Shown one piece after another: positions 930 to 56,044 of a stretch of DNA of 64,000 nucleotides; within the stretch, counting starts at the first letter, position 1; each line of letters begins with the position of its first letter. The translations under genes were made by a program, and so were the position numbers. This DNA is from Tetramitus jugosus. Lineage: Eukaryota; Protista; Heterolobosea. Where the stretch lies: contig OW569356.1 in the NCBI GenBank assembly GCA_937625935.1, forward strand, positions 248,001 through 312,000, written 5' to 3'. The notes below the pieces were generated by a model that saw only the letters and a program-made list of their open reading frames with translations, did not search any database and was not told the origin of the DNA.

Positions 930-3900
930 TTATTCTAATTTCATTTGTGATTGAAGAATGTTGTTCAATTCAGCACGAGAAGCGAGCCAATCCTTGAAAG
1001 TCACAGAAAAAGGTTTTCTCTCACTTTGTGACAATTCCTCGTGTAACCATTCATTGAATATGATAAGCAAAGCATATCTCTCCAAATAATTAATACCTCT
1101 CTCATGAGCAAACTCGTGCTTGGCGGTCTTTGGCTGTTTTGCCTCAGGAATGGATTGAAGTTTGCAATCGTAGATAGTTGTCCGAAGATTTTGCATATGA
1201 CTGCAATTATCAATTACCTTGTCCACCTGACTCTTGTTTCTTGGTCCATATTTCAACACTCGCATTAGTTTTGTGATAATACGATAATTTCCATTTCTCA
1301 AATTCTGTGAAGGATCCGCAATGGGTGAAGGAGGAGAGTTCGATTCTACCAATTCTTTGGTGAGATCGTAAGCATTCAATCTCCAGGAGTTAATGAGCGC
1401 GAGAACAACTAGGCATGTCGTAGTACGACCTCTACCCATTTGACAGTTGGCCACGAAGTGTGTGGTGTGAGGATTTGCGCTGACAGCTGCACGAACTATC
1501 GCATCAAAATCATCAGGATCGGGTGCTCGCTCGTCAGTAATCGGTATTCTGTAAAAATCAACTAAATATCCCTCCTGTCTCTTTGAATGATAGATATCCC
1601 TTAGTGTTACAATAGATTCATTGTCGATCGGAATATAGTGTGTGTATGGTTGCATGTCATCAGTTTCATCATGACTCAAAATGCTATTGTTTGTGGTTTC
1701 TGACTCTTTCAAGATATCGTGCTTCAGCCTGTCCTCCATATTCTCAACACGATCTGAAGTGATGCCAGCCTGGATGATGTTCTCAAAAGGGCGGTCAATA
1801 TCTCGCAAACAATAAGGCTCATTATTGATGTAAACGAGTGGTTCCTCTCTCAAATTGATCCAAACCACTTGATTCTGTTTAGCTTTTAGTAGGTTGAGCA
1901 CATTCTCAATTCCTGTCTTTGTTGGTATTGCTACACCATAGATCTGACCATATTGTGATCCTATTTGTCTAAAATTCGGAGCTCCTTCAATATGAGGCAA
2001 CAGTTGTTTCCGCTGACATCCTAAACCAATAAAGTTAATGACCATTCGATATAGAAAACAATCAACAAAACGATTCAGATACTTACCTGGAAAATGATCA
2101 TGTTTCAGTAGGGTTCTTCTGGCCAGAACCTCCCCAAGACGGGTTTCAGAGTAAGGCTTTTCTTGACTAACTTCGAGCTTCATTTTCTTAAGAGCAGATG
2201 CAGGATTGCTATCGAGACTAGCCAATGCCTTAGCTATCTCTGGCCGACTCATCATCCAGTCTGAAAATGTTACCGCATGTTGTTCCTTGACTTGGTTGTG
2301 TAAATAAGCCGAATAAACTACCATCAATAAATACTTCTTCAACATCTGACCAGCTCTCTTCAAGTGAATGTCAGAAGTAGATGATGTTCTCGATGTTTGA
2401 GCTGTCAATATTTCCATTTCAACATCTTTTCTGAAGTCTAATGCTCCAGCACCCAGCTGACATAGCTGCATGGCATAGTTTACTTCTGAAACTCTTCGTA
2501 AACTGTCAGGAATGAGTCTCAATATTGTGGCTGATGCATTATAATCAAGTATAGAGGAGTTGTATGGGTCTACAGACTTGATGCACTCATCCCTCAACAT
2601 CCCTCCAAAGTAAAACTCGCGAGTGTGAATATACAGTGTAGAAATAACCAGAGCAAAGAAGCATCTTCCAAGACCAAAGTGATCATAAAATAGCACATTT
2701 TCTCCTTTCTCATACACGACACACAGTGCTGAATGTAAACCATCAACATCATCAAAAGTTGGACATGTTAATGCTGTGATAGGGATATGATGATAATTGA
2801 CCTGAGAAGCAAAATTAGCCAGTGAGTCCATCACCTCAACCGGCGTTTGAATACTGTCGGCAGAGCACTGCTCCCAAAATGAAACTAGTTCTGATTGTTT
2901 CGTTTCATCGTGTAACAACAACTTCGAATCTCTTGTTATTTCGGATAAGCAATCCTCCTTTAATGTACCTTCAATTGCCTGCAATTGAGATGCTTTGATT
3001 CCAATTAGATTTAGATTAATAAATGGATGATCAATGTCTCTCAGATTGTAAGGATTTCCGTTAATGTAACACAGACATTCTTCTCTCAGATTGATGATAT
3101 GTATAGGCTGACTCGTATTCTCATTCTTCAGGATGCTCACAAATCCTTCAATGCTCGGTGTGGCACTCGCATAAATTTGGAAATTGCAAAAATTCATTTT
3201 TCTAAAGTTAGGAGCTCCCCCAACATATGTCTCTTTAAAGTCGGATAGAGGTTCAAAGAAGTGATCTCTCTTCAATATAGTCATAGCAGAAAGCACTTTA
3301 CCTGTACGATTGTACACTAAATCAACATCATCAAGTGTGGATTCCAACTCATCCTTGGTCTTCAGCAGCGCGTCCTCGGGATTGTGTTTGTAAAACATCA
3401 ATATATTATTTTGTTCAGATCTTTGTTTCATGTATTCATCGAACGTCATCCAATTACTATTCGTCCTCAAGAGTTGAGCTCGTAAATAATCTGCGACAAT
3501 AATAATGTGATAGTAGCGCGACAAATATTTGAAAGCAATCTTAGCAAATAGATCTCTGCTTTCCTTGTTACGACTCTTCTCAGCCTTCGTTCGGAACTTG
3601 TTAATGGCTGATCTTAAATTTCGAACAGATCCACAATTGTCAATGGCCAAGTCTGAGATATCTTTCGATTGAGATCCAAACTGTAGCAATCGCAAGAGCT
3701 CCAAAACAGGCTTATACATGCCTGTTTGGTACAAATTTCGCAAATCCTTCTGACTCTTCAAAATATTCAAGTTTCGTTGCTGAGCCAATAGTTCTGCCCG
3801 ATTCAATCTCTGTTCATCTCTTAGTATATCCATCAACCATGCAACAACCATTGCATGTGTCGATCTTGTTTTTCCCAATTGACAATTGAACACAATGTGC

Positions 3901-5297
3901 GCATCCTCCTCAATATCCCTCAAACATGAAATCAATTGATCAACATCTTGATAAGAAAAGTCACTTTCAGCGGTGAGAGGTATGCGAATGTAGCGAACCT
4001 TGTATCCCTCATCAATCAACTTTGAGTAAACTTGTTTCGGAGTCATGAGCGAGTCATGTGAGATGGATTCCCAAGTACCAGCAACCAATCCAGTCGTTTT
4101 ACTATTCTGATGCTGTATACCTGCTGCAATCTCATCATGAATCAAAATATTGTCAGAGTAGAGCTGTGATTCGCGAATAATATCGAATTTCAACGCTTCT
4201 TCCATCTCTTCAATTCTCTCCACAGAGATTCCAGAGTAGTATGACATGTTCTGAAATGGATGATCACTCTCTCGTAGCACATGCGGCTTCGAATTTATAT
4301 AAATGATGGGTTCTTCACGCAAATTGATCCATACAACTGATTTTTTCTTTGCGCCCAACACGTTCAACACAGCTCTGATACCTGATACCGTAGGTTGAGC
4401 AACACCAAACACTCTGCTCATGATTGGATCGACACTTGACATTGTTGTGGTTGTCTCTTCTGCGGATGCAGATAATAAAGATGCAATTGGGGTGGGCAAT
4501 GTGGCAGCTCTAAAGTTCTCTGCACCACCCAGTCTCATGAATCGCAAATCATTGACTCTCATCATTGAATGATGTGATTTCTTGTGATTGATCAGTTCGG
4601 GATCTCCTACTCCACTGCTGCGACTACTACTGCTCTTGCCTCTGCCCTTGTTCGATGACAAAAGATTGCCCATCGTTTCAGTTGTTGCAGTAGTGGAGGT
4701 GGTAGAGGTAGTTGATGATGTAGTCATGGGATGAGTGGTAATGGCACTTGAAATTAAGCTCTTGAGCAATGTTTGATCAAAGTAGTGATCTACTTTGAGT
4801 AGAGTGTTCACGTTGAGTACTCTGCCATTTCTCTGTGCGAGAATGGTTCGTTCATTGACACTTAGAAAATGATCGTTCATTTTTTTCAAGTGATGGTGAT
4901 GATGAGCTGTGGTTCGTAGCTTTGAATGATGATGGTGGTGGTGGTGGTGGTGATGGTGGACACGTGGATGGTAATGATGACCGCTGTCGTGTTGTTTTTT
5001 TTTGTGGTGCGCAGTATTATTGTTGTTGTTGTTGTGAGCTGAACTCGTCTCAACGTGACTTGCAACAGTGGACGCGTGGTGCAAAATAAATGATGTTTCC
5101 TCCTCGAGTTGCGATTGTTGCTCCGGTACAAAAAAAGTGGTTGTTGTTGTACCCTGGAGTCGTCGGCTCACAACTACTAACAACAACAGTTGGGATGATG
5201 GACAACAGAGAGCTTTTGTTGGGTTTTGTCGTACAAGGGCACTTTTACATGTTGCGGCTTTCAGGCATGCATTTCTTTGCTGATACAAGCGCAGCAT
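930..5297 (-). CDS. Paladin-like / PTP-like inositol phosphatase with three tandem PTP-like repeats; one 66-nt in-frame intron
   Basis: Three repeats of LKxDH / GAxNFR / INLREE; active-site motifs FNCQLGKTR and ANCQMGRGRTTT. Removing intron 2021-2086 restores DHFPGCQ. Confidence 0.85.
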   Translation of the reverse strand: MLRLYQQRNACLKAATCKSALVRQNPTKALCCPSSQLLLLVVVSRRLQGTTTTTFFVPEQQSQLEEETSFILHHASTVASHVETSSAHNNNNNNTAHHKKKQHDSGHHYHPRVHHHHHHHHHHHSKLRTTAHHHHHLKKMNDHFLSVNERTILAQRNGRVLNVNTLLKVDHYFDQTLLKSLISSAITTHPMTTSSTTSTTSTTATTETMGNLLSSNKGRGKSSSSRSSGVGDPELINHKKSHHSMMRVNDLRFMRLGGAENFRAATLPTPIASLLSASAEETTTTMSSVDPIMSRVFGVAQPTVSGIRAVLNVLGAKKKSVVWINLREEPIIYINSKPHVLRESDHPFQNMSYYSGISVERIEEMEEALKFDIIRESQLYSDNILIHDEIAAGIQHQNSKTTGLVAGTWESISHDSLMTPKQVYSKLIDEGYKVRYIRIPLTAESDFSYQDVDQLISCLRDIEEDAHIVFNCQLGKTRSTHAMVVAWLMDILRDEQRLNRAELLAQQRNLNILKSQKDLRNLYQTGMYKPVLELLRLLQFGSQSKDISDLAIDNCGSVRNLRSAINKFRTKAEKSRNKESRDLFAKIAFKYLSRYYHIIIVADYLRAQLLRTNSNWMTFDEYMKQRSEQNNILMFYKHNPEDALLKTKDELESTLDDVDLVYNRTGKVLSAMTILKRDHFFEPLSDFKETYVGGAPNFRKMNFCNFQIYASATPSIEGFVSILKNENTSQPIHIINLREECLCYINGNPYNLRDIDHPFINLNLIGIKASQLQAIEGTLKEDCLSEITRDSKLLLHDETKQSELVSFWEQCSADSIQTPVEVMDSLANFASQVNYHHIPITALTCPTFDDVDGLHSALCVVYEKGENVLFYDHFGLGRCFFALVISTLYIHTREFYFGGMLRDECIKSVDPYNSSILDYNASATILRLIPDSLRRVSEVNYAMQLCQLGAGALDFRKDVEMEILTAQTSRTSSTSDIHLKRAGQMLKKYLLMVVYSAYLHNQVKEQHAVTFSDWMMSRPEIAKALASLDSNPASALKKMKLEVSQEKPYSETRLGEVLARRTLLKHDHFPGKYLNRFVDCFLYRMVINFIGLGCQRKQLLPHIEGAPNFRQIGSQYGQIYGVAIPTKTGIENVLNLLKAKQNQVVWINLREEPLVYINNEPYCLRDIDRPFENIIQAGITSDRVENMEDRLKHDILKESETTNNSILSHDETDDMQPYTHYIPIDNESIVTLRDIYHSKRQEGYLVDFYRIPITDERAPDPDDFDAIVRAAVSANPHTTHFVANCQMGRGRTTTCLVVLALINSWRLNAYDLTKELVESNSPPSPIADPSQNLRNGNYRIITKLMRVLKYGPRNKSQVDKVIDNCSHMQNLRTTIYDCKLQSIPEAKQPKTAKHEFAHERGINYLERYALLIIFNEWLHEELSQSERKPFSVTFKDWLASRAELNNILQSQMKLE
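2021..2086 (-). other. Spliceosomal intron (66 nt, in-frame, stop-free) in paladin-like gene
   Basis: GTAAGT...CATTAAC...TTTAG. Splicing removes 22 aa and restores the conserved DHFPGCQ. Confidence 0.85.
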
Positions 5298-9206: not shown

Positions 9207-10599
9207 ATGGCAGAAGTGGATGATCGCAGAAATAAAGCATTGAACAATTTGATGTCGAAACTTGTTCAACACCGAGAGTTTGAGAGTCAGGTGAAGAATA
9301 TGAGAGAGAATCAAAGAGACCTCAAAAAGCAATATAACAAAACGGAAGATGACTTGAAGGCATTGCAGTCAGTTGGACAAATTATTGGTGAGGTTTTGAA
9401 ACAGTTGGACGAAGAACGATGTATGTGTTGACGATTATTTTGTTTGTGGTTGTGGTGGATCAGATCTTTTATGTTGAAAATCATTTTATTGACATTCGTG
9501 TGTTCTTTCATTTCAACAACAGTTATCCTCAAGGCATCGAGTGGACCTCGTTATGTTGTCGGATGTCGTAAAAAGATTGACAAGACAAAGTTGACACCTA
9601 GCACGAGAGTGGCACTTGATATGACAACATTGACCATTATGAGAATATTGCCAAGAGAAATTGACCCTGTTGTGTTCAACATGGTTGAGCCAGAGGAGAA
9701 TGCAAAGAACAAGACATCATTCAACGCCATTGGTGGACTCAATGAACAGATTCGTGAGTTGAGAGAAGTCATTGAACTTCCATTGATCAATCCTGAGCTC
9801 TTTAAGCGTGTGGGTATCAAGGCACCAAAGGGTGTTCTTCTCTATGGTCCACCGGGCACTGGAAAGGTTTGTATCGTGAATGACTGTTCACTTTTTTTTT
9901 CGTACTTGTTCCCATCCACGTCCTTGTACTAACTCTCACATTTAAACTCCTAAATGATCACGATAGACCCTGATTGCAAGAGCAGTAGCCAGTAATATCG
10001 AAGCCAACTTCTTGAAGTGTGTCGCCAGTGCAATTGTAGATAAATATATTGGTGAGAGCGCTCGTGTGATTCGTGAAATGTTTGGATATGCTCGTGATCA
10101 TCAACCATGTATCATTTTTATGGATGAGATTGATGCCATCGGAGGAAGAAGATTCTCTGAAGGTACTTCTGCTGATCGTGAAATTCAGAGAACATTGATG
10201 GAGTTGTTGAACCAGATGGATGGTTTTGATGCAATGGGTCAAGTCAAGGTGATTATGGCCACGAATAGACCTGATGTTCTTGATACCGCTCTGTTGAGAC
10301 CTGGTCGATTGGACAGAAAGGTTGAAATTCCGTTGCCAAACGAACAAGGCAGACTCCAAGTTTTACAAATTCATGCAAGACACATAACCAAATACGGCGA
10401 AATCGACTATGATGCAATTGTAAAATTATCTGATGGTTTCAACGGTGCTGATTTGAGAAATGTTTGTACAGAAGCTGGTATGTTCGCCATTCGAGGAAAC
10501 AGAGATTATGTGATTCAGGAAGATTTCATGAAGGCTGTGAGAAAGGTTGCAGAAATGAAGAAGTTGGAAGCTCCTGCCCACACATACTCAAAATCATAA
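9207..10599 (+). CDS. PSMC6: 26S proteasome AAA-ATPase Rpt4; exons 9207-9420, 9523-9866, 9967-10599
   Basis: [27 protein letters not shown], Walker A GPPGTGK|T, Walker [34 protein letters not shown]. Splicing joins three ORF-track pieces in frame. Confidence 0.96.
9421..9522 (+). other. Spliceosomal intron (102 nt) in Rpt4
   Basis: GTATGT...CAG; the join gives EERFILK. Confidence 0.9.
9867..9966 (+). other. Spliceosomal intron (100 nt) in Rpt4
   Basis: GTTTGT...TACTAAC (9927-9933)...TAG; the join gives GPPGTGKTLIARA. Confidence 0.92.
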
Positions 10600-32970: not shown

Positions 32971-35900
32971 ATGAACATGAGTAGCACTGCATTGCGACCC
33001 AACAATAACAACAATAACAGTCATCACCCCAGTCGGAATCAATTCTCCCATTCACTGCCCCGAATCATTACTCCCAACAACACCAATAGCTCTCCACCAT
33101 CATCCAGCACAGTGACTAGTGCTGCTTCTTCCTCCTCTGTTCCCACACCTCCCACCACTCCCACCACCTCTCATCAAATGATCAACACCACTCCCACCAA
33201 CACTCAACAACAAACACAACAACAACAACACATTATCAACATGTGCAACAGTGGTAAATACAAACCTAACCCTGCCCTCATTCCACACATTGTCTCTCTC
33301 CTCACCAACTTTCAAGAGGCACTCAAGAAAAAGGCTCAGGGTCAATCAGAGCTCTATGACAAGATGAATCAAAATTTTAACAAACTACCACCCAGTCAAT
33401 TAATCTTGGCATTCAAGGCATTGAGTCTTTGTGCTGGATTGTTGACTCCTGAACATCATCAATCCTTTATTGCCATTTTGTTGCGTCAGAGTGAAGAAGC
33501 CATTTATTTTCAACGTGATGCAGACATTGTTCACTCGTATATTGACTTTTTGTCTGCCATGTTCACTTATTGCCCCACTTATTTTTCATCCTTTTTGGGC
33601 TTTTGCGTCAATATGCTGAAACCAATGGATTTGTTGCGATTTCAACAATTCAAGGCCATGGTCATGAGTTCACAAATTGCAACCACTGGTAGTGTAGCAA
33701 GTATGACCTATGGTGGTGGTGGTGCATCTTCTTCTTCTACTCAACAACAACAACAACAACAGCAGCAGATTCAAGCACTGAGACCAGAAGTACTCCAACA
33801 ATTGGAAGAACTCAAGTTTCACAATGTACAACTCGTACTGCAACACTTGTCTGTTGGAAGACATGCCACTCTATTCCAAAAATCAATTATTGCACTGTTG
33901 GGTGATCATTATCCACATCATTATAATCCCCTGCGGTTTCACAAGTACTATGTGTTGAATCTGTTGCAACTGTCTCAGTATTTGCCCGATCGATTCTTTT
34001 CTCAAATCTTTCGATTGATTATTGATCGAATGATTGCCATGGATGCTGAGATTAAACCAGGATTAGAAGATGCCACAACCACAGCAACAGCTACCACACA
34101 AAATAACAACAATACAGCCATGATGATGATGATTAACAATGAAGAGTCATCACAACAACAACAACAGAACTCAACAGCAAACATGACGAGTGCTCAATTG
34201 TTGTTTGATATGGAGTTAGATGCCAGTCTCATGGATCCTTCAGCTGATGAACACTTGTTGCAAGTGTACATGGCTGAAAAATTGGACACTGTCATGCTCA
34301 TTTTGTTTGAGTACATTCATGCCTGCTCTACCAACCCAACCAAGATTCAACGAGTGTTTGACACTATGATGCAAATGTTTTCATCCTTTGTGGCCAACAC
34401 GTATCAGTTGCACTCGTTGCAATTCCTCATGTTTTACATTTGTAGCTTCAATGTCAAGTTTGTTCATCGATTTATTCAATATTTGTTGACCAAGGTGTTG
34501 GACAAATCACAGAATGTCGATGTGAGAAAGTGCTGTGCTGCCTACATTTCTGGTTTTGTATCACGTGCCAATTACATGACTGCTGAATCAGTGGTGGAAG
34601 CATTGGAGAGACAAGTCATTTGGCTCGAGCAGTACATTCAAATGTTTGAAAAGACGGTGACATCAACGTTTCTCGATATTCACACCCATGCCATCTTCTA
34701 CTCTGTATGTCAAGGAGTGTTCTATGTCTTGTGCTACAAGATTTATCCATTGATGCAGAGTGAACAGGGACGTCAGTTCTTGCACAATTCAGTGTTTGAG
34801 AAGATTGTGTATTCGCGGTTCAATCCATTCAAGGTACGTTTATTTTTTGTATTCCTTTTTTTTTAATGGAATCAATCATGTGATTGATTTGTTGTTGTTG
34901 TTCGATTGGTGACTAAACATTCTTTCCTTGTATTTGTGTCCGCTCGTTGCTCGCTCATATGCTTCAATTGAACAATCATGATAATGATTGTCATTGATGA
35001 ATTCATTTGATCAAATTTATGATGTTGCATTCAATAATTAATTTATTGATTGTACTTCGATTGTGTTCAATGTGTATTGGATAATCACTTGTTCATAATC
35101 ACTAACATGACAACAACAACATTGATCATCATTGGTGTGTGATGATGATTCTATGATTCTGTTGTACATGTGTGCATGTCCAATAAATTGTTTGATCATC
35201 ATTTCCATGCATGATGTTGACAAACAAAAACCATACAATCTAATGATTGTTGATGCTATTTGGGTTTCATTCATTCGACTCGTGTGCCTTGTGTGTGTCT
35301 GTGAATACTTTGATCTATTGTCATTGTATCAAAATAATATTATGACTTGTTGCCATGATGATGATGACGTGTGCATGTGGTATTATGAAAATAATATACA
35401 ATGAACATATACACAACAACATCCGTACGATAGATTATTGCCATGGATGTTGTGCAAGAGGTTGTCAGTGCATTTAGACACTATTCGCTCCATGACTTTA
35501 CTCAGCTCCTTATCAACAATAGAGACTTGGTCGTTGTCAAGTCCAAATCCACAGTCAACTACCTGGAGAACAACTTTTTCCCATTTGATCCTTATCTGTT
35601 GAGACAATCTCAATCATTTATCAACCCATTGTATCAAAAGTGGGAAGGTGGTTATGATTTGAGTTACAATAATCTTTACAATAATCCACCGTCAAGGAGT
35701 CGATCGCGGTCCATTCGCTCTACAACAAGTCTCAGCAGCAGTGATGATGGCATGTATGATGAAGATGGAGCAGAGGCCTTCTCCTATGAGGACAACCTCG
35801 TTGGATCCAATCACTACAACTCGTCCATGGACCGCGCAGGTCTCTTTTTCCAAGCATCGGAATCTACGTCGACCTCTACCACCAAGCAACAACCGAACAA

Positions 35901-36285: not shown

Positions 36286-36642
36286 ACATGTTATCCGGAA
36301 CAAAAGCATGCTTTTTGTTTATTTCTCTTCATGCAGCCATGAAGATGGTGCAGCACACATCTGTTTCCGTCTAGTGGCCAATCTGCGTGTATGTGTGTGT
36401 GGTACCAACCAATGCAACAGATATTGTGTAGATGTCTGTCTCATTCCCTTTGCATGTCAGGACATTGCATCAGGTTCCACCAATGCTCCGCTTTCTCTCG
36501 AAATAAAATTCTTTTCAAACGTAATTCAGCGACCGAACGAACCTTCATGCTGCGTTATTTTGTGAGGAAAAGATCGACAGTCGTCGGAGAGATCAACAAC
36601 AACAACACATTGAGATCAAAATCATTTACTGCTACGACGAAT

Positions 36643-40089: not shown

Positions 40090-41937
40090 ATGTTGAATTT
40101 TTTGAAGGAACACAATCGTTATCTCTCACTGAATGAAGGTGATGATCACCCATACGACGATGATGAAGAGAATAGCAACCATCGTCATAGCAATAATGAA
40201 GAATTGAATCTGTTGGGTTCTCATCATAATCACAACAACAGGGGCGTCACCACGCGAGCCAACAAGGCATCCCTATCACTGATTGTTCAACTACCAGATG
40301 ACACACTGGTCAACATTTTTTCATTCTTGTCTGTCGATACCATTCTCAATGTTTCTCTCGTTTGTCGCAATTGGTTCGAGCTAACCGAGTTGAACGTGTT
40401 TTGGAAACCGATATTTGAAAAGGCCATTTTCAACAGTTCTATTCCACGTTATGTCCTCTATCAACACAGAGCATCATCATGGTGGAAGACGATTCAAGAG
40501 AGATTTGATTTTAGTGAGAGAATGATACAGGCACCTCATGCCGCACCTCCCATCTTGCCTGTCACTGTACCTACTACTACAACTGCTGCTGCCAATAATA
40601 ATAATAACAATAACAATAGCAATGGTGATGACATTGATGATGATGATGACAGTGGTGATGAAAATGGTGGTGATTACAATAGCAACACTAGTCTTCAGAT
40701 ATCAAAGCGCGGAAGACGACAATTGTATGATATGATCAATCGACTCGTCTATGAAAAGTACTACAAGGGACAATCGACTCAATACCTTCATCACTTGTCA
40801 ACACCACTGTATTACAAGACTTGTTACTACTATCTGCATGGTTATCAAGTCGTTGGAACGAGAAGGTACGTGCGTCAACAAGAGATTCAAAGAAAGGCTG
40901 CACGTTACAATGAGACGTGCACCACATGTGGAATGAATTATTTGCTGTATGCAGTTGTGCCATTGTCCACGCTGTTGTTCACACTGTTCATGATTGCATT
41001 GTTGTTGAAGGAAACAATAGGAGTACCAGAGTTTGTGAAGCAGATGATTAAGGAGAAAGAGCACAAGGATGGTCCAAAGATCAATGTGAATCAACATTCT
41101 GATCTTTGGTGGTTCCCAGTGTTCTTGCCCTTTTTTGCTGGATTGGCGCTATGGTACATTTTGCTCCTACAGGTCAATGTGAAGCACTTTGTCCGGTATT
41201 TGAGTCACATTCGACAGAATTATAAGATTGTTTCCTATGCCATCATTGTATTTGCCTATTTCACAAGTGTCATCATGTTTAGTGTACTAGGCATGCTTGC
41301 ACTCATGTTTCCATATGACAAGAAGGCAAGCATAGAGAATTGCAAGTGGATCTGGTTGCGGAAGATATCACACAACGATTTGTTGCTCTTATCGCCGATT
41401 GTTGCAGGTATTATACTCGTGAATTTCATTTGGCCTCTATTGCAGTTTATTGTGTTCTCTATCCGACGCAGAGGCAATTGCATTTCAGTCAACTGTTTAC
41501 GCAAGAGTGTTTTCCAATTGTTTGTCTACGGTGGAGGCATTATCTGTCTGATCATGTTCATTGCTGTGATGATATCGAATTATACGGAGACCGAGCAACA
41601 AAAGGAGAAGGGAGGAAGCAAACTCACCTACTTGTTCCAAAACTTGGCCTTTGTTCCTCTGTATCTCATCCAGATTGCCATTGTGGGGCTGTTCATGTTC
41701 CTATTTTATCGGTTGTGGTACTCTGTACCTCTGGCTGTTCGGTTCAAAGTTCGGGTGTCCTGTAGCGTTCTGGCCGTATTGATCGTGCTCTCCACAGCAA
41801 TGCTTATTTCATTTGAGCTCCTGCTTGCGATTCGAGGATTGTCTGTTTACCTCTTAATCCCTCTCATCCCTCTTCCAACAGCTCTTTGCTCCATATTCTA
41901 TACTATCCTTTATTTGAAGAGAGTGTTGTTCGGGTGA
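40090..41937 (+). CDS. F-box protein with multi-pass transmembrane C-terminal half
   Basis: F-box LPDDTLVNIFSFLSVDTILNVSLVCRNW..FW, then about 8 hydrophobic helices including WWFPVFLPFF and AFVPLYL. Confidence 0.82.
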   Translation: MLNFLKEHNRYLSLNEGDDHPYDDDEENSNHRHSNNEELNLLGSHHNHNNRGVTTRANKASLSLIVQLPDDTLVNIFSFLSVDTILNVSLVCRNWFELTELNVFWKPIFEKAIFNSSIPRYVLYQHRASSWWKTIQERFDFSERMIQAPHAAPPILPVTVPTTTTAAANNNNNNNNSNGDDIDDDDDSGDENGGDYNSNTSLQISKRGRRQLYDMINRLVYEKYYKGQSTQYLHHLSTPLYYKTCYYYLHGYQVVGTRRYVRQQEIQRKAARYNETCTTCGMNYLLYAVVPLSTLLFTLFMIALLLKETIGVPEFVKQMIKEKEHKDGPKINVNQHSDLWWFPVFLPFFAGLALWYILLLQVNVKHFVRYLSHIRQNYKIVSYAIIVFAYFTSVIMFSVLGMLALMFPYDKKASIENCKWIWLRKISHNDLLLLSPIVAGIILVNFIWPLLQFIVFSIRRRGNCISVNCLRKSVFQLFVYGGGIICLIMFIAVMISNYTETEQQKEKGGSKLTYLFQNLAFVPLYLIQIAIVGLFMFLFYRLWYSVPLAVRFKVRVSCSVLAVLIVLSTAMLISFELLLAIRGLSVYLLIPLIPLPTALCSIFYTILYLKRVLFG

Positions 41938-42798: not shown

Positions 42799-43673
42799 AT
42801 GGGCGCCAAACAATCAAAAACCACTTATTATTACTTTGGTGATTGTCAGCAACAACAACAGCAGCAGCAACACTCATCATCATCGACACTTGCTCTCGCC
42901 AATGTCAACATGGATGAAAGGGTGAAGATTTTGTTGTTGGGAACAGGTGAGGGAGGAAAGGCAACGATATTCAAGGTTTGTTCTTACTTGTTGTTGTTGT
43001 TGTTTTTTTAATTTTCCAATATGGAACATTTCACTGACACCAACCAACCAACCGAACCAACAAATGAAATACAAAAAACCAAATGATCATTTTTTTTCCC
43101 TCATACACACATACACACACAGCAAATGATTCATCAATATGGCACAAAGAGAAAGAGAGACAGGACAAGTGACCAAGAAGAAGACAACTTTCTCAATTCA
43201 TATCAGAGTCTAGAAGTGCGTCGATCCTTCATACCCATCATCCATCGAAACTGCATACTCGCCATGTACAATCTCCTCCAAGGTGCTCTCCATGTCTTTC
43301 ACCTGCCCCTAGACATGACACCCAATTCTCCGACTAGGAATGCAGTGGACAGCATTGCTCTGGAGAGGGATCATGCCATTAGTTTTGAAGATTGGGCACT
43401 GTCTCAAACCATTGGTCGCATGATACAATTCCTATGGAATCACTGTCCAGAGATTCAAGAGGCATACAATAGGAGAAATGAACTGGAATTGGAGTACATG
43501 GACAGTGCGAGGTATTGGTTCACTGAGATTGATCGATTGATTGAGCCGTCCTATGTGCCAAAGATTGATGACATTATGCGCATGAGGGTCAAGACGACCG
43601 GTATCGTCGAAACAGAGTTGTTCTTGCCTATTCGAGTCAGAAGAAAACATCATCAACAACATCAATTGCAATT

Positions 43674-46337: not shown

Positions 46338-46401
46338 TCCTCTCTTTTGGTTTTGTTACGCAACATAAAATATTTACTGACTGTGAATTTTTGGAGGGAA
46401 T

Positions 46402-48087
46402 TTATTGACCTAACTCTTGATCAATTTGCGCAAGCTCTTGCTTCATCTCGTCAATATTACTTCTGATATCATTGATTCTTGTCAGGAATCTATTTTTCAT
46501 AGTTGGATTGGGCGTGTTGGCGTGCTGACGCTCATTCTCCTCCAACTCTCTCTGTCTTTCCTCGAGACTAATAGCCACAGCGTTTCTTCGCTCGACCAAT
46601 CGATGCTTATCGATCATTTGGACTAATTCGGGAGATGCTACCTCTTCTTCTTCCTCATCATCGTCGTCAGCCATGGTGTGGTGATCATCGACATTCATCA
46701 TGGACTCGAACATTTCTTCATCGTCGTCTTCTTCTTCTTCAGATGCAGCATCACTTCTGGAGTCTTCGTCAAACGTACTGGACGTAGGACTCTTCTCTGA
46801 TACTGGTCCACCAAGCATTGAGGACATGAGCCCGCCTGATTGAGCGAACGCCGCAGCAAAATTGGTTGGTCCAGTGGTAGAGCTGGCCACTGAGACAGCA
46901 TCATCATCTGAATGACCAGAGAAACTATCGTCATTCATTTGAGACAGAGACGCGAACGAAGCCATATCCGATGTGCTATTGTTATCGTACATGGAAGGAG
47001 AGGACGTCGATGTGGTGACACGATTGCCCAGCAAGTAGGGCGTGAGAACAGATTGTCGTTGACCGCGTCCCTTGTTGGTCATTGCCGACGAAGAAGTGGA
47101 TGGACTTGCCAGAGCTACATTACTTGCCAGTGTGGATGGTATGGATGGTCGGTCCTCATCTGAGGAATCCTCGTCGTCCGATGATCCAGACGAAGAGTCA
47201 GTGTCACTGGAGAAGTCATCAAACTCGTCTTCCTTGTCCGTCAGCACCTCTATAATCACATCTTGCTCATCCTCCTTTGTCATCTCATTGAACTGATCAA
47301 CCATGTGCTTAATGTCACTCTTTGAAGCATCCAGTGTCCTTGCTTCATAGTGATGATAAATGTTGTGAGTGCTGGGCGTGATACCAGACATGGAAGACAA
47401 CAACAATCGCTTCCTCTTCTTCTTCTTCAGTTTGTTCATGTGAGCGTGAATGTGATGATCAGTGTTGTGCGTACCACTAGTACCAGTAGTAGTTGCACTG
47501 TGATGATCCATGGAAGACGCAGCTTCTCTCTGTCTTTTCATACTATTCAATTCCTTGTCCAACTGTTCTCTAGTCTTGACTAGAATCATTTGAGAGACGT
47601 CTCCTGCTTTAAAATACGTTTGATAATCAATGGACTTGTATGCTTCGATAATGCATGGCATATCCAACAACTCACAAGGATAGTATTCGTCTCGGAAGCG
47701 CAATCGGCCTCTTCTGTGTTTTTTGATTGTGTATTCCACATCGGATATATAACCATCATCATCATTATTATTATTATCAATCATACTATTGTTGGTGCTA
47801 TTGTTGGTACTATTGTGATGAAGGTGGTGGCCACTGCCATTCATTTGACTGTTGCTATCCTTGTTGTTATTTTTTTCAGTGTCCTTCTTGGGTTTGGAAA
47901 TGATGGCACTCTTCAAGAATTGAAGTATACTCGGATCATCACCAAACGCAATATCAAGATCCAACTCAATCAATTTACTAGAGTCTTTGGATGTATCGTG
48001 ATTCTGAAGTAGTGTATGAATTTTGGAGGCGAGTTCAGGTGGTACTCTCAGGATGCATTGTTGTTCTTCAATCTTGTTCGCTGACAT
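46402..48087 (-). CDS. TAF7: TFIID subunit TAF7
   Basis: EEQQCILRVP, LLDMPCIIEAYKSID..YFKAGDVSQMILV and SGITP (TAFII55_N); acidic region; C-terminal NPTMKNRF coiled coil. Confidence 0.88.
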   Translation of the reverse strand: MSANKIEEQQCILRVPPELASKIHTLLQNHDTSKDSSKLIELDLDIAFGDDPSILQFLKSAIISKPKKDTEKNNNKDSNSQMNGSGHHLHHNSTNNSTNNSMIDNNNNDDDGYISDVEYTIKKHRRGRLRFRDEYYPCELLDMPCIIEAYKSIDYQTYFKAGDVSQMILVKTREQLDKELNSMKRQREAASSMDHHSATTTGTSGTHNTDHHIHAHMNKLKKKKRKRLLLSSMSGITPSTHNIYHHYEARTLDASKSDIKHMVDQFNEMTKEDEQDVIIEVLTDKEDEFDDFSSDTDSSSGSSDDEDSSDEDRPSIPSTLASNVALASPSTSSSAMTNKGRGQRQSVLTPYLLGNRVTTSTSSPSMYDNNSTSDMASFASLSQMNDDSFSGHSDDDAVSVASSTTGPTNFAAAFAQSGGLMSSMLGGPVSEKSPTSSTFDEDSRSDAASEEEEDDDEEMFESMMNVDDHHTMADDDDEEEEEVASPELVQMIDKHRLVERRNAVAISLEERQRELEENERQHANTPNPTMKNRFLTRINDIRSNIDEMKQELAQIDQELGQ

Positions 48088-48318: not shown

Positions 48319-49689
48319 TTAGTTGGGAGTTGCTGGAGAAGTTGCGACCACTCCATACTCATCTCCATCCTCATCCACACCCAGAGTATAGCTCGTGCTT
48401 GGCTCGTTATTTTCATTGCTTACATTCTCAGAAACGTCAAGTAGGTCATTGTTGTTCTCAGATGAAGCTGGAGTAAATTGGAAGTAGTTGTCAACTGGTT
48501 GTTCTTCTTCTTCTTGTTCACCAGATGTAGCGGCTGAAGGTGGTGCGTCTGTGGACGAGGATCCTTGTTGCGCATTCTCCAGAGTCTCTTCTCCCTTCAA
48601 TTGAGTGCTCTCAGTCTTGACGTCGCTTGCAAATGAGAACCATGAGGTCTTGATTGCGGTCCATGCACCTTGTCCTGCAGTGTACAGTCCTTCCTTGGCT
48701 GCATTAGTCGCTGCAATTCCCTGCTTCACAGTCTCGTTCTCCCACACTTGAGAATTGTTAATCCTTTCCTTCATTTCACCCACTTTTTCCTTTGTAGTGT
48801 GAAGCACAGGTGCAGTGACTTGTGCAGTCTTCTCTCTGGCTGCACCCAACATTGGTTGTAGCTTTTGAGTAGTGGACTCCCATGTCATCTTTGTAGTGCT
48901 GACAATGGGTTGTGTGGACTCTGCAATCTGTTGACGCAAGTCCTTTGTCTGTTCGTCCAACTCTTTTGACTTTTCCCTCATTTCGTCCAGTGCTTGCTGA
49001 CTCTTGACATATCCCATGGCAATCAGTGAAATGGCCTTGTCATATGCACTTTGCTTCTCCTGTAAATGTTCCAAATATGACTGTTTGCTACTGTTGCTAC
49101 TGTTGCGATTGGTGTGTTGACTGCTGCTGCTGGAACCATGTCCAATAAATTCACGATAGGATACAACACTGATTGTCTGATCATTCAAAATGGCTTGATC
49201 TATCATGAGGTCAGATCAAATGGAAATCAAATGAAAATCAAACAGAATGGTGGGTTATCGTGGTGATCACGTCGTGTCAGTCAATATACATCATCATCAT
49301 CATTTGATAATAATAATAGTGTGTGAAGAAGACAAAAAAAAATGAGACGCCACACATAGCACACACATACTCAACAATACAGCAGTAGAAAAGGCTGCTT
49401 CATCTTCCAACACGACAACAGCAAACAACTGTTCTCTCTGATTCTGATTCAAAATAATTTTCTCGACACCGCCGCAAAAGGTGAAGAATTCGTTGAGTTG
49501 CTTAATGGATACATCGTCACTCAAGTCATACACAATGACAGCACAGTTCAATTGATGTGGTGTCAAGATGTGAAGACCAGCGTTTCTAATTGCTTCTTGA
49601 GTTAATACAAATGGTTGTCTCATGGTTGGTGGTTCATGACTGTTGCTGGCAGAGGATGTAGCAGCTGATGACGATGATGATGGCATCAT
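48319..49689 (-). CDS. RRM-domain protein (Vip1/BPA1-like); exons 49371-49689 and 48319-49199
   Basis: LNEFFTFCGGVEKI..AVV..EDEAAFSTAVLL|NQAILNDQTISV, then AMGYVKSQQAL. Confidence 0.75.
49200..49370 (-). other. Spliceosomal intron (171 nt) in RRM gene
   Basis: GTATGT donor; the first AG gives in-frame AVLLNQAIL. Confidence 0.85.
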
Positions 49690-49844: not shown

Positions 49845-52800
49845 TCAGAGCAGGAGAGCCGAACTCTGGACCGTAGTGGCATTTCTCACATTTTGGTTCT
49901 GAATAATTTTCACTCGAGAGCTAAAGTTGAGGGTGCTCACTGTTTCAGATATGCTAGTAGAGCTTGGAGAAATGTTGGCAAACATGATCGTCTTGGAATT
50001 GCCTCCAATAGAATCCTGCAATAAGAGAGTCAGCTTGGAATTCCTATAGGGAACAAAGGTCTTCTTTTCAGCTGATAGAGCAGCGATCACATCACCAAGT
50101 GAACTTAAACTCTTGTTAATGTGAGTAGCCTCCTTGAGTCTGTCTCCCTCAGAGTGGGATTTTGATATTCTCTCCGAACCGGCTAAGTCAACAAACAATA
50201 TCTTACTGCTCGTTGTAACAATTTCGTCTCCTTTGTTAAAGGATGTAGTTAGATAAATAGTAAATATAGTGTGTGATCTAGAAGATCGATCGTTCATCTC
50301 TGTTCGATGAACCTGTCGCTTCTTGTTTCCATCACTAAGCGTTTCGAGCAACGCTTCTGGAGATACAACATTGTATTCTGATACACCAGGTACATACATG
50401 AAACCACTTTGATGTTGCTTCATGTCAAACTTTTTACCTGATCCCTCGTCCAATAGATCAAATATGCTATCCAGATAGAGTTCGATCATAGAACACTTGA
50501 CGGAGAAAGTGTTTGTTCGATGTCCATTTGCTGCGTAAATATCCTGTCCCGGATTAAAGCTGTACTTTCGTAATAAATCAAACAAATAGTTTGCAGCTCG
50601 CGGTAGGACTCCTCGATGGACTCCCGCTTCATCTCCATAGATTGTAAAAGTTTTGCCGCTTCCTGTTTGACCATAAGCCATAATACAAACATTGTAACCA
50701 TCAATTGCACTCTGAATCAATGGTTTAATCTCTTCGAAAACTTCATCTTGTGATGCTGTTTCATTGAGGGTTCGGAAGAATTCAAATGACTTTGTTCCCT
50801 GGGTGTTTGTATAAACAGTTACTGTCTGCTCATCCTTGAGCTCAACTCGTCCAACTTGTGTATCTCCTCGCCTTTCCCCTTTTAGGATGGGTCTCATTCT
50901 GATAATTACTCTAATATTTCCTTTCATATCCTCCAGTATGTTATGAAGATGTTTTCGTTTTCTCATCTCTTCGTGGAATCGTTCTCTCAATACTGCATTC
51001 TCTAGAGCTATTTTTTCTGACTTCTTCTCCTCCATAACTCTTTGTTGTATAGCATTCGATAATAACTCTGAGGAATCAGATCCATTCATCAAATCTCTGA
51101 TTTGATATTTCAGCTCTCGGATCGCAACATCAGCAGATTGAGCCATCAACTTGTTGTGCTCGTACTCAGATGTAATATTTTTGATGTGAGTATTCAAATC
51201 GCCATTCTCTTGTCTCAGAACATCAATCTCATTATATGCATCATCAAGATTATCGTTTAAGGAAACTATTTGAGATTCTCTCTCTCGAATACTAACAACC
51301 TTCTCACTCTCCATTTGTTTTACTAACTGTGACTTTTCTGAGTACCACGAATCTCGCTCATTCTTAGCAACGGCTGTTAGTATTTCTACCTCCTCTTTCC
51401 AGTTTTTAAAAATGATCTGTTTCTCTTCCTCCCATTGCATTCTCTCCTTGTGTAGTTGATCCCTAATATGTTGGTTTTGTTTCATATCGTTCACTCTATC
51501 CTGTTCCGAACGTATTTGAAGGGATAGTCGCTTTATATCCTCTTGCGATGTCTGGCTCTCCCTCACCCATTGTTCTTGATCTCTACTATGTTCATCCTTC
51601 ATCATCTCGACCTGTTGTTGTGAGTGAAACAACTTTGATTGGAGTTCTATATTGTGCTTCTCCATCATTTGACATCTTCTTCTCATTTGATTCAAGTCAC
51701 TCTCTATGTCATCAATATTGTAAGATGAATAAGAAGAAGTTATCTCCTTCCTAAGACGAGAATTCTCTATCATTAATTGTTCTCTGTCCTCGTTTGCCTT
51801 TCTGAGAATATCTTTCTTTTCATTCGCCCACATTCTCATCAACATAGTTTTTTCCTCTGTCATCTGTCTCAGTAACTCATTCAAATCTATATTACTCTTA
51901 TCCCTCTTAAACCCATTCATTGGGTATTTCATTTCTCTTCCATTGTTCGGTGACGTCAAAGAGTTCCCCTTTGGAGATTCGACTCGAGTACTCTCTGAGA
52001 GAAGGGTGCTGCTCCTAGTACTTGGCGAGAGTGGGAGCGAAGACTGAGAATTCGACAGTTTGAGCTCGTTACTGTAGAGAACCTTAGGGCTAGGAACATT
52101 GGAAGCATACTCTTGAGCACTCATTTTCACAGGAGATTCCGGTCTATCAACACTTCCCCCGCTCGATGCGTTCAATTCAGGATCACTTGATTCAGAAGAA
52201 TTTTTCCCTCTATCATCGTCACTCTTTACCTCGTCTTCTTGCAGTATTAGGGTACTGCTAACCTCTTCAAACGATTGTTGTTCCTGTCCCTCATTTTGTA
52301 AATTAGAATTTTCCACTGTTGAGATGTTAGCCCCAGGGACTATCTTTAAGCTTGGAGTTAATGTAATAACACGTGCCTTGTTTGCCGTTGGAGGATTTGA
52401 CAACAAGTCACTGGAAGAATAATTTGATGTTTTTGAAGGATTGAAGGATGAATGAGAGCCGATATATGTTTCCTCCGGAAGCGCAGGATGCTCATATTCT
52501 GGAGCTGGTTGCTCTCTATCTTCTAAGAACTCATCCTCTTCAACCTCCTCCACCATGTCTTCGGTTGTGGGACTGTTCGTGGATGATATTGTAGCTAATT
52601 GAAGAACCGTATCTTCATTCAGATCAAAATCAGCCCCAACAGTATCATCCATTAACTCTGTATTGTTCCAGAATATCAGTTGTTCTAATGATTAAGATAA
52701 AGTAAGTCGTGTTAGGCATGATCCACCCAAGTATCAATGTTAGAAAGCATACACACCATCAACGGGTATATTTGTGACTTTACACAGATTCTTCTTTATT

Positions 52801-53031
52801 TTAAGTACCCTACATCAATGAATGAGTGGATTGAACAGAAAAACACATAGCAAGAGAAATGGAACTTACGAGAGCTTATGGGCATCAGTTCTCTTCACTG
52901 ACACCTTGTATCTCTTCTTATTTGATAAAGAGAAGACTGCAAAAGAGAACTTGCCCTTGTTGAAAACTGGTTAGTCCAGAAGTCTAAAAAGACAAGAAGC
53001 GAAGTATTTGGTGACATACTTGTGGATCCAT
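49845..53031 (-). CDS. C-terminal-motor kinesin (kinesin-14) with spliced N-terminal ubiquitin-like domain; exons 53020-53031, 52870-52955, 52757-52809, 49845-52684
   Basis: Neck RKHLHNILEDMKGNIRV, GQTGSGKT, NDRSSRSH, VDLAGSER, HINKSLS, PYRNSKLT. Upstream exons splice in frame via GTATGT, GTAAGT and GTGTGT donors. Confidence 0.88.
52685..53019 (-). other. Three short introns in the kinesin 5' region (52956-53019, 52810-52869, 52685-52756)
   Basis: 64, 60 and 72 nt GT-AG introns; GACTAAC in the first and CCTAAC in the third. The joins give a continuous Ubl-like peptide. The first acceptor is AAG and is less certain. Confidence 0.72.
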
Positions 53032-53194: not shown

Positions 53195-54410
53195 TTAATT
53201 TTGAACTCTCTTAATTGTCTTAAAGTCAGCCAATGCTTCATCAGCATAACCGCTTGGCTTAGCGTGTTTCTCATTGATACTGGTGTCTTTTGTGTAACCC
53301 TTGGTCTTCATGTCGACCCAGTTGGTTTGACCGAAGACAGATGAGCCAATGTCCTCAAGGATAGTGACATCCTCAGAGTCTTCTTCTCCAGAGGCGGAAG
53401 CGGAGCTCTTTGCAGCCAGTCTAACAACTTCGTTAACCAAGGCACCAACAGCGTCATAAATTTCGTGTGGTTGTGGTGCTCTTGCCATATAAGCAGGAGT
53501 AGATACGATTAGGTTAGTTTCGTCAACATGAATGGCGTCAACATCCAATTGAACAGCAGTAGATCCACAAGCAGTAACACAATCGATTGCTTGCTTATCT
53601 TCCTTTCCAACGGTGACTTGGCAACCTTCACGATTTGCGTTGCTCAAAACTTTGGCGACAAGAACTGGAGCAATGCAGATAGCACCAATTGGCTTCTTAG
53701 CATCAATGAAATCCTTAATGACACGTTCAGTTTCGGCTTCAATCTTAAAGTTCTATAAATTGGTATTTCCATTCATAACGAGACATCGTGTGAGTAAAGT
53801 GTAATGAATTTTTGTGTGAACAAGTGTGGATGGATGCACACAAAATGGGCAGCAAAATAAAAGAAACATACGGTTGAGTCCTCAGCGTAGTTGCTCAAGT
53901 TCTTTGCAACACCAAATCCACCAGGGATGATCAAAGCATGATAAGCATCAGCCTTCAAAGTGTTCAACTTTCTGACTGGTACTCTAGAAATACGGGATGA
54001 CTCAGCTGCCAAATCTCTCACTTCATTCTTCTCAACAGTTTTGGTGGCGTGATCGTATGTTTCTTCTTGGTTTCCATCAGGAGCAAAACACATAGTTTTG
54101 TATCCGCTTCTAGACAAATGGATCAAAGTGGAAACAGCTTCAGTGATTTCAGTTCCGTCCAAATAACCACATCCGTGCAAGAGAACAGCAACTGTTGGTT
54201 TGTTATCACCAGAGGTGGATGCAGCAGCCTACAAACACACAGACAATCAGTTTTTTATTCAAACATAAAAATATTTCAAAAAACTCAACAATGAGTGTAA
54301 TAACGTACATAGTATCTATTTTGGAAGGTAGTTGGTGCAGCGTATTGGCCTTGCTTCAAGGCAAAAGATTTTGGAGCACGAACAACGGAGGATGCAAATG
54401 AGCGGAACAT
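53195..54410 (-). CDS. ElbB/ES1/GATD3-like DJ-1-family glyoxalase, mitochondrial; exons 54309-54410, 53872-54228, 53195-53752
   Basis: Presequence-like MFRSFASSVVRAPK; VAVLLHGCGYLDGTEITEAV, IPGGFGVAKNLS, KPIGAICIAP, VSTPAYM. Confidence 0.9.
53753..54308 (-). other. Two introns in ElbB-like gene (54229-54308, 53753-53871)
   Basis: GTACGT...TAG (80 nt) and GTATGT...TAG (119 nt); both are phase-0 in-frame joins. Confidence 0.88.
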
Positions 54411-54567
54411 GTTTGTGAGTGGTGATGCTTTTTTTTTGTTGTGATTGTAACAATTGGTTGACTTTGAAGTTTCAATAAAAACTTGAAGACTTCACCGAAA
54501 AATATTATTCCGAAGGTGTTTTGTATTCACATGCAGTGGTGAAAACGATTTTATGATGAAATTCAAG

Positions 54568-55233
54568 TCATTTTGAGTGTTCCATATATCCCTGCATCAT
54601 ATTTTTCAAGGTTGCAAGCTCCTTTTGAACTTGCTCTCTTCCTTTTCGTTCCTCCTCTAACACTTTTTCCAAGTCTTCAATTCGTCTCGTGTTCTCTTCG
54701 TCTATCTGCATCATGTTGACACTACCTACACTTTTTTGCCCCAATGAATAAGAGCTTCTATTGCTTCTAGAACTTTGCAGGTGAGATCTCTGAGATCGAG
54801 CTGAAGATCTTGAACTACTCAAAGACCTGTTCATGGTGGGAGAGGTTGGCTGCATCGTGTTAAAACTTTTTGACGGATAGTTGTTCATTTGATCGTAATA
54901 AGAATTTCTTTGAGACATCATTTCTCTGGCATCATCAGGAGCCAATAGATGTGGCAGAATATGAGATGTATATCCGTGTGGTTTGCTTGAATAGCCATGT
55001 CCTTGCCTCTTTGTTACAAATGGTTGAGAGCTGGCTTGTTTTCTGAGTAAATCAATCCCACTAGTGAACAAATGATATTCTCGATTAGTGAATATTCCAC
55101 ACGACAGTCAAAAAGATGTGATCACGTACCGGTAGTCCCGAATAAAATTGAGCATTGCCTTGTCTTCGGATGATACTCGTTGCTTCCAAGCTTCAGCATT
55201 CCTAACAAATCGATAGTCGTTCACATCAGACAT
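54568..55233 (-). CDS. Small hypothetical protein with C-terminal coiled coil; intron 55061-55129
   Basis: Exon 1 MSDVNDYRFVRNAEAWKQRV..DYR joins GIDLLRK via GTACGT...CACTAAT...TAG. Confidence 0.7.
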
Positions 55234-55459: not shown

Positions 55460-56044
55460 TCACTTAGTAAACAAGAAAGAATATTGATTGGAGTGCACTT
55501 GGAGTAATGCCTTTTCATAGGTTTCAAAGTCTGCATAATGTAAACATGTCGTAGGAAAATAAATTAGTTAGTAAAATGATACCAAACGAGAGAGAACACA
55601 ACAAAATACATCACATCAATAGATACGAACCGAAATCAACTTGGCTTGGAGGCAGAGTAAAGTTCGTGTTGTAACTTTCTCTGATCGTTTTTTCGTCTTG
55701 AACAATTCCAACCAATTCAATGACCGAACCTTCTTGTGCATCTCTCACCTCATTCACAAAAGCCTGGAGATCAATTTTCACAAACACGAAAAAAGAAAAT
55801 ATTGTTAGTTTCGTATTCATATTTGTCACCAACAGAATAAAGCACAAAATTTTGAAATACAAACAATGATTTGAGGAGCATCTTTAGATTGTGCCAAAAT
55901 CAGTTGAGGTCCTGAGATCTCCAAAATGGTACCAACAAGGGTTACTTCATGATTAATAAAATTAGGCAGCATTGATGTTGTGATTCTTGGTTTAACGACG
56001 TCTTGTTGAGTTATTTCATGTCTGGCTGGTTTGTTGTCTTCCAT
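55460..56044 (-). CDS. RPA3: Replication protein A 14-kDa subunit; introns 55764-55864 and 55531-55630
   Basis: PRITTSMLPNFINHEVTLVG, VIELVGIV and FDFETYEKAL fit the RPA3 OB fold. GTTTGT/GTTCGT donors with AACTAAC/TACTAAC. Confidence 0.82.

Follow-up and report, generated by a model that had tools for sequence, protein, structure and literature searches.

Where does the branch site of an intron lie as the intron becomes longer: does it keep its distance from the acceptor, or does it stay near the donor? The question is raised by 14 introns in a 64,000-nt stretch of the genome of the heterolobosean Tetramitus jugosus (contig OW569356.1, forward-strand positions 248,001 to 312,000; G000:C13:248001-312000), referred to here as the window. 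An earlier sequence-only reading of this DNA proposed that a single rule covers all 14: a GTnnGT donor with invariant G+5 and T+6, a branch motif at similar distances from the donor, and use of the first AG after about +55 (plus signs denote distances from the donor), with introns growing downstream of the branch. The last of these proposals stands in part, as the AG-free zone does lengthen with the intron, whereas a branch at a fixed donor distance is not found. The introns themselves are ordinary U2-type GT-AG spliceosomal introns. The reading that we prefer, with a probability of roughly 0.5, is that they would carry early usable branch sites, including in the long introns, and that the first AG beyond such a site would be chosen over a long range.

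Introns of the window and of adjacent DNA

The 14 introns, their six types of GTnnGT donor, their internal AGs and the five branch-motif positions recorded earlier were all reproduced exactly from the sequence. Positions are those of the window.

2086..2021, minus strand: 66-nt intron, GTAAGT...TTTAG, sole internal AG at +4; recognized by its signals inside the long open reading frame (ORF) 930..5297
9421..9522, plus strand: intron 1 of the Rpt4-like gene, 102 nt, GTATGT...AACAG, AG at +42; donor at the end of coding potential, frame restored
9867..9966, plus strand: intron 2 of the Rpt4-like gene, 100 nt, GTTTGT, TACTAAC at +61, AG-free inside; carries a conserved 20-mer at 9902-9921
34834..35433, plus strand: 600-nt intron, GTACGT...GATAG, no internal AG; spliced in RNA contigs from four runs
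42976..43122, plus strand: intron of the G-alpha gene, 147 nt, GTTTGT, CACTGAC at +57 (85 nt ahead of the AG), AG-free inside
49370..49200, minus strand: 171-nt intron, GTATGT...GATAG, AG-free inside; GACTGAC at +89, TCTGAC 11 nt before the AG
53019..52956, minus strand: intron 1 of the kinesin-14 gene, 64 nt, GTATGT, GACTAAC at +44, AGs at +35 and +52 unused
52869..52810, minus strand: intron 2 of the kinesin-14 gene, 60 nt, GTAAGT...TGTAG
52756..52685, minus strand: intron 3 of the kinesin-14 gene, 72 nt, GTGTGT...ATTAG, CCTAAC at +41, no internal AG
53871..53753, minus strand: intron 2 of the ElbB-like gene, 119 nt, GTATGT...TATAG, no internal AG, no CTRAY; CTCAC at +78
54308..54229, minus strand: intron 1 of the ElbB-like gene, 80 nt, GTACGT, AACTGAT at +57, AG at +24
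55129..55061, minus strand: 69-nt intron, GTACGT, CACTAAT at +40; AG at +49, 4 nt past the branch A, skipped
55630..55531, minus strand: intron 2 of the RPA3-like gene, 100 nt, GTTCGT, TACTAAC at +58, no internal AG
55864..55764, minus strand: intron 1 of the RPA3-like gene, 101 nt, GTTTGT, AACTAAC at +55, no internal AG

GTATGT opens four of the 14 introns, GTTTGT and GTACGT three each, GTAAGT two, and GTTCGT and GTGTGT one each. Internal AGs are confined to +4 (twice), +24, +35 and +52 (in the same intron), +42 and +49; the introns of 100, 100, 101, 119, 147, 171 and 600 nt lack them entirely, as had been claimed, and so does the 72-nt intron. The window introns are supported by frame continuity and coding potential, to which RNA is added for the 600-nt intron only. 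The intron at 2021..2086 is in frame and stop-free, a situation that the reading frame cannot test. In the kinesin-14 gene, the acceptor of intron 1 (52956) is forced by the frame, with frames worked out by hand, and the skipped AG at +52 sits 4 nt after the branch A of GACTAAC. Splicing of the G-alpha intron, the 3' part of which is nearly G-free, joins GKATIFK to QM and thereby rebuilds what we take to be the conserved G1 box of G-alpha proteins (GxGxxGKST..KQM).

To the window we joined the adjacent upstream 200 kb (pieces L005-L024), giving a sample of 264 kb on one contig of a genome of 26.35 Mb (56 contigs, approximately 41% G+C). About 83% of the sample has a coding score, making this a very compact genome, and introns occur at a density of roughly one per 6 kb. 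Same-strand spacers can be minute: one measures only 67 nt from a stop codon to the next ATG (window 46338-46404, minus strand), and others span 70-130 nt, including L023:8634-8726 and L022:7363-7436. Near-identical RNA is present in soil metatranscriptomes of many studies, and the organism has the look of an intron-poor soil protist.

Plain ORF-bridging, with any acceptor or a long maximum length, proved unusable in this setting, as it produced false bridges between neighboring genes and picked up decoy donors and acceptors just as often. The search therefore combined ORF-bridging with a codon-usage score and required both frames to close inside the candidate. Ends of coding potential were then matched to candidate donors and acceptors, adding 28 introns, of which 15 are rated high and 13 medium in confidence, to give a curated set of 42, the reading frames of which were verified by ORF arithmetic. 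In the 14 window introns and the 28 further ones alike, the intron begins with GT and ends in AG, and its removal restores the reading frame; certain acceptors are ambiguous between in-frame AGs, resulting in lengths of, for example, 66 or 87 nt and 92 or 116 nt. Pfam searches on ten candidate exons did not separate introns from intergenic spacers. Neither a metagenome scan nor an exact-product look-up returned relatives for intron comparison, and a word-based protein search returned none at E <=1e-20, with low-complexity words suspected of filling its candidate list. Ras genes provide a view of the whole genome, which holds at least 160 Ras-family matches: about 23 of these genes are split, with gaps of 69-352 nt (median near 145) between consecutive hidden Markov model segments, as at C16:75905-76236, C16:185399-185752 and C24:254698-254990, indicating that long introns (130-350 nt) are common in the genome.

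AG-free zones lengthen with the intron

AG depletion is not limited to the last ~40 nt of the introns but clearly extends through their whole length. Divided into the first 50 nt, a middle zone and the last 40 nt, the window introns have observed/expected ratios (O/E) for AG of 0.21, 0.00 and 0.09, respectively; the corresponding values for all 42 introns are 0.50, 0.12 and 0.29. The last internal AG lies at or before +91 in every one of the 42 and at or before +68 in all 11 introns of 119-600 nt, and the AG-free zone therefore grows with intron length. This architecture is directly observed, with AG-free tails of 61-600 nt in 11 of the 11 introns of at least 119 nt.

The difference between length classes is most evident near the acceptor. 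Fifteen introns of 81-113 nt contain ten AGs in their last 40 nt (O/E 0.44), versus none in ten introns of 119-171 nt, where 15.6 would be expected; these longer introns have no AG within 62 nt of the acceptor. Beyond +68, the same ten, a set that excludes the 600-nt intron, contain no AG against 29 expected (P ~2e-13, or 4.5e-7 when the expectation is halved to allow for the general depletion). Restricting the count to the five firmly modeled long introns other than the 600-nt one leaves none against 14 expected.

Candidate long bridges between ORFs fall into two groups with none between: those with 9-21 AGs, near expectation, and those with 0-3, all early and mostly behind GTATGT donors. The most intron-like member of the AG-normal group, at 58128..57933 in the coordinates of the joined 264 kb ("big"), would have been a conventional long intron of 196 nt with AGs to +142 and TCTAAC at +148. 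We rejected it as intergenic: a dispersed repeat lies inside it, and the downstream ORF has its own ATG.

Two other AG-poor stretches behind donor-like sites stand apart from the curated set. A 348-nt stretch at L010:547-894 (minus strand; big 50894..50547) has AGs at +19, +52 and +60 and ends 9 nt before a start codon; it was left out as being at best an intron of a 5' untranslated region (UTR). At L009:1046-1488 (big 41046-41488, plus strand), a donor-like site is followed by 443 AG-poor nt with AGs at +47 and +53 only.

Acceptor choice and branch motifs in short introns

The proposed use of the first AG after about +55 describes the 14 window introns and fails outside them, where about ten of the 28 further introns leave AGs unused between +57 and +91 (+57, +59, +60, +62, +63, +65, +67, +68, +74, +79, +82, +84 and +91). 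These late unused AGs, among them those up to +91 in introns of 81-113 nt, adjoin the presumptive branch, either just upstream of it or no more than 3 nt downstream. Upstream cases include +79 before CTAAC at +85 (113-nt intron), +63 and +65 before TTGAC at +68, and +82 and +84 before TTGAC at +89. Skipped AGs within 3 nt past the motif are exemplified by CTGAC-AG at +62 to +68 (105-nt intron), CTAAC-aAG and CACTAAC-TAG. As read from the sequence, the acceptor rule is that of a classical linear search, in which the acceptor is the first AG that follows the branch by about 9 nt or more, an AG upstream of the branch is unseen and one too close to it is skipped. In introns of up to 113 nt, the motif is separated from the acceptor by 9-51 nt.

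Enrichment of branch motifs is likewise a direct observation. The most enriched intron 5-mers are ACTAA (14 occurrences versus 3.0 expected, z 6.3) and CTAAC (11 versus 2.2). Motifs of the ACTAAC type are found anywhere between about +38 and +90, their position shifting with length in the short introns, in conflict with a constant distance from donor to branch. The cluster at +55 to +61 that had suggested anchoring to the donor (TACTAAC at +61, CACTGAC at +57, AACTAAC at +55, TACTAAC at +58 and AACTGAT at +57, all positioned as claimed) is uninformative on this point, four of its five values coming from introns of 80-101 nt; the caveat attached to the original proposal, that short introns alone cannot inform it, holds. 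Because about half of the introns are without any CTRAY, the branch consensus appears to be loose.

Candidate branch sites in the long introns

A 160-nt intron of high confidence (L006:7497-7656) has no A from +105 to its terminal AG, which should place its branch no closer than 56 nt to the 3' end. In nine of the 11 long introns, one of CTAAC, CTGAC, CTAAT, CTCAC, TTGAC or CTAAA is found at +54 to +91, always past the last AG; this motif set is broad and was picked after seeing the data. CTCAC accounts for four of the long introns, at +78 to +91.

Genome-wide, on both strands, we counted the pattern GTWHGT-N{x}-TACTAAC. A far-spacing window served as background, the reversed-pattern control having given 540-660 matches from common words.

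N of 30-60: 153 matches
N of 61-91: 87 matches
N of 92-122: 68 matches
N of 300-330 (background): 83 matches

The excess, about 75 donor-TACTAAC pairs, falls within motif positions +37 to +67, and among the matches listed it is mostly between +37 and +50; across the genome, motifs at +68 to +98 show little or no excess and those at +99 to +129 show none. The background of this pattern is inflated by a dispersed element of about 52 nt, AAAAGCCTACATTACTGAGGGTTCTCGAGTAGTCTCCTATCTCAATACTAAC, which is located in an intergenic spacer (L010:8054-8105, minus strand) and in at least 12 other genomic places.

The 600-nt intron

Splicing of the longest intron is observed directly. RNA contigs from four runs and four studies carry the joint 34831->35432, which skips 600 nt and is bounded by GT..AG, and show that the gene continues unspliced from there to its stop at 36283, with a 3' end near 36500. 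With 167 A and 104 G between 34834 and 35433, about 29 AGs would be expected, versus no internal AG, 37 GA and 21 CT observed. This is the longest AG-free gap on either strand in the 264 kb, followed by gaps of 389 and 315 nt. Early in the intron, at +77 (34910), stands TGACTAAA; TGACTAAAC occupies 34910-34918.

The predicted fold of the intron has a minimum free energy of -154.5 kcal/mol (z -2.5 versus shuffled sequences), making it only moderately more structured than those. In this fold, the first bases GUACG (34834-34838) pair with CGUAC (35423-35427) just before the acceptor. A search of the intron against Rfam gave only sub-threshold snoRNA-like matches, among them a weak one to the C/D-box snoRNA model snoR28 at 35357-35423 (28 bits versus a cut-off of 45, E 0.006). 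The soil RNA contigs differ from the assembly by indels of 18, 7, 6, 3 and 2 nt in the 3' UTR (window 36326-36477) and by changes of CAA/ACA repeat length in exon 1 (window 34084-34152), indicating that several strains of the organism are represented in public data.

Donor sites and the U1 and U6 small nuclear RNAs

Of all GTNNGT sites in the sample, 24 of 1811 (1.3%) bridge coding ORFs, versus 0.29-0.38% of other GT donors, a rate equal to that of decoy motifs, and we conclude that the donor bias is genuine. Invariance of G+5 and T+6 is seen in the window introns and does not extend to the wider set, in which 39 of 42 donors are GTnnGT, most commonly GTATGT (17 of 42) and GTAAGT (7 of 42). 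The three departures, GTATGA (L013:7478-7542), GTAAGG (L018:488-608) and GTAATA (L021:1064-1129), belong to likely introns; the last of these contains a perfect CACTAAC, followed by a skipped TAG and then by TATAG.

The small nuclear RNAs (snRNAs) that contact the donor were inspected, as had been suggested. There are two U6 genes (80 bits each), with a normal ACAGAGA box, and two full-length U1 genes (62 and 52 bits, under the Rfam cut-off of 69.5), which have different 5' ends.

C37:178816-178963 (L001:1501-1648): U1 gene with 5' end AUACAUACCU, a perfect match to GUAUGU
C52:156912-157059 (L002:1501-1648): U1 gene with the canonical 5' end AUACUUACCU, about 1.1 kb from a 5S rRNA gene (L002:2757-2876)

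Both U1 genes share the upstream motifs GCATAAATTT (about -40) and CTCTGGC (about -10), as well as an Sm-like site, AAUUUCUGG; the shared upstream motifs speak for both being genuine genes. They differ at the base opposite donor position +4 and are identical opposite +1, +2, +5 and +6. Accordingly, the GTnnGT form of the donor, with +3 and +4 free, can be ascribed to the pairing of +1, +2, +5 and +6 with bases common to both genes. A pair of U1 genes differing opposite +4 offers a simple explanation of the relaxed donor, and it also provides a way to ask whether variant U1s serve different donor classes.

Evaluation of alternative explanations

In the reading that we prefer, short introns would have a conventional layout, with an ACTAAC-like branch and the weaker variants CTGAC, TTGAC and perhaps CTCAC. 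Usable branch sites would lie about 40-90 nt from the donor at any intron length, and after the first step of splicing the acceptor would be the first AG situated at least about 9 nt further on, over distances of 60 to approximately 500 nt. Extra length would then accrue downstream of the branch and would be kept AG-free by selection against premature (cryptic) 3' splice sites, which would account for the AC-rich, GT-rich or GAT/TTG-type sequence of which the 3' parts of long introns consist. A wider version, which we put forward tentatively and with the odds somewhat against it, holds that this inverted layout is genome-wide, that the branch can be reached only if it lies no more than about 90 nt from the 5' splice site, after which the first AG is found at distances up to at least ~500 nt, and that introns lengthen only between branch and acceptor, by AG-free sequence.

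Several observations weigh against early branches in long introns. Only six of the 11 long introns are firmly modeled (four in the window and two of high confidence); the other five are of medium confidence, and the way they were picked may favor AG-poor candidates. The sole perfect CACTAAC of the 600-nt intron is not early, lying at +267 (35100-35106). ACTAAC-bearing introns in the sample are mostly short, so the genome-wide spacing of donor and TACTAAC says little on long ones. The long 3' parts are low in complexity (AC-rich and GT-rich sequence and repeats of GAT/TTG), a composition that in itself makes AG rarer. AG is already about two-fold depleted in the first 50 nt, and a pure scan from branch to AG does not explain this. 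Lastly, several long introns (171, 169, 122 and 121 nt) have weak YTRAY motifs 11-21 nt before the acceptor, such as the TCTGAC 11 nt ahead of the AG of the 171-nt intron and TTGAT at -21, -18 and -12 in three others, making a conventional late branch possible in those introns. The last two points, together with the loose consensus implied by introns lacking CTRAY, are what favors a competing explanation, in which the branch of long introns is also late (10-45 nt from the 3' splice site) and AG has been purged beyond about +50, or past the minimal lariat distance, as a result of degenerate branch recognition and intron definition, since any AG after a branch-like sequence could compete as a cryptic 3' splice site. 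We regard this as unlikely, if well short of negligible. The 160-nt intron without an A within 55 nt of its 3' end weighs against it, as does a comparison of length classes: introns of 81-113 nt tolerate AGs immediately before the branch, and the last 40 nt of the long ones have none of the 15.6 expected. Moreover, late branches with purged AGs would still require potentially usable early sites and thus overlap with our preferred reading, so that the two models differ mainly in which site is used most.

It is improbable that the pattern is an artefact of a small sample, in which a normal branch-to-AG distance in introns of about 100 nt would by itself produce the +55 to +61 cluster and the long AG-free stretches would reflect neutral expansion of AG-free microsatellites. 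The provenance of four of the five motif positions fits such an account, as do the low-complexity 3' parts of the long introns and the fact that coding and intergenic DNA also contain long AG-free gaps, of 130-390 nt (103 gaps of at least 120 nt in the 264 kb). Against it, the 600-nt intron is no simple repeat, and its 37 GA and 21 CT in the complete absence of AG amount to a strand-specific loss; all 11 long introns are AG-free past +68; and the candidate bridges form two groups rather than a continuum. Still less probable, in our estimate, is that the introns of about 100 nt with a GTTTGT donor and TACTAAC near +60 are copies of a mobile, introner-like family and owe their architecture to descent. 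Roughly nine genomic introns, intron 2 of the Rpt4-like gene among them, do share GTTTGTA...TTTTGTACTTGTTCCCATTCACAT..GTACTAAC, and a conserved 20-mer, GTACTTGTTCCCATTCACAT, lies between the donor and TACTAAC of several GTTTGTA... introns.

Sites of the 20-mer: window 9902-9921; C2:26005; C13:499731; C2:386928; C13:98799 (L010:799-818); C18:393552; C20:49579

The many similar introns expected of such a family were not found genome-wide: with up to three mismatches, the 20-mer core has nine matches in 26 Mb versus three for the reversed control. It is absent from the RPA3-like and G-alpha introns, and one copy is not in a coding intron but precedes a start codon, within the 5' region of a different gene. 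What the 20-mer marks may be a regulatory element that these sites share, and not a mobile intron.

Comparison with known systems

Ordinary short introns of fungi and protists have a GTAWGT donor, a CTRAY branch and a YAG acceptor. The 60-113-nt introns described here fit this type fully, with the branch 9-51 nt from the AG and too-close AGs skipped. They differ from it in the donor, which is unusually free at +3 and +4 (GTTTGT, GTACGT and GTTCGT are common), and in the accompanying pair of U1 genes with different 5' ends.

For the long introns, the closest parallels come from distant branch points. Gooding et al. 2006 (PMC1431707) describe a class of human exons with AG exclusion zones and distant branch points, against a background in which the three 3' elements usually lie in the last 40 nt of the intron and distant branch points are exceptional. 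In both the human class, as presented there, and T. jugosus, a long AG-free stretch can be read as placing the branch at or before its start, with the first AG after the branch being used, and all 11 introns of at least 119 nt are AG-free over far more than the 40 nt before the 3' splice site. Unlike in the human case described there, the zone is found here in all sampled introns of 119 nt and more, up to 600 nt, and starts within 70-90 nt of the donor.

For the mutually exclusive exons of OGDH (PMC7969005), intron size is described as restricted by distant branch points close to the 5' splice site; the putative early branches of T. jugosus would similarly constrain the rest of the intron. The OGDH example, as described there, is one regulated vertebrate intron with mapped branches and mutually exclusive splicing, whereas here the arrangement, with branches placed from sequence features, would be the default of constitutive long introns in a compact microbial genome. 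A yeast intron with a long distance from branch to 3' splice site requires structure between the two, according to PMC3239191. The introns studied here resemble those of yeast in their ACTAAC-type branch, the choice of the first AG and an occasionally long branch-to-AG distance; they differ in presumed distances of 100-500 nt and in the only moderate structure of the 600-nt intron. What would be new in T. jugosus is a genome in which every long intron adopts the arrangement by default. A literature search returned no description of such a layout as the default of a genome's long introns, a result that does not prove its absence.

Implications for splicing and gene finding

For gene finding in this organism, the working description is a GTnnGT donor followed by the first AG about 9 nt or more past an early branch, and a long AG-free stretch after a donor is itself a signal of an intron. 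If the branches of the long introns truly lie near the donor, T. jugosus would be a natural system in which to test how the spliceosome locates the 3' splice site after the first step of splicing, since the first AG would be selected at a distance of hundreds of bases, with branch, pyrimidine tract and AG no longer as close together as usual.

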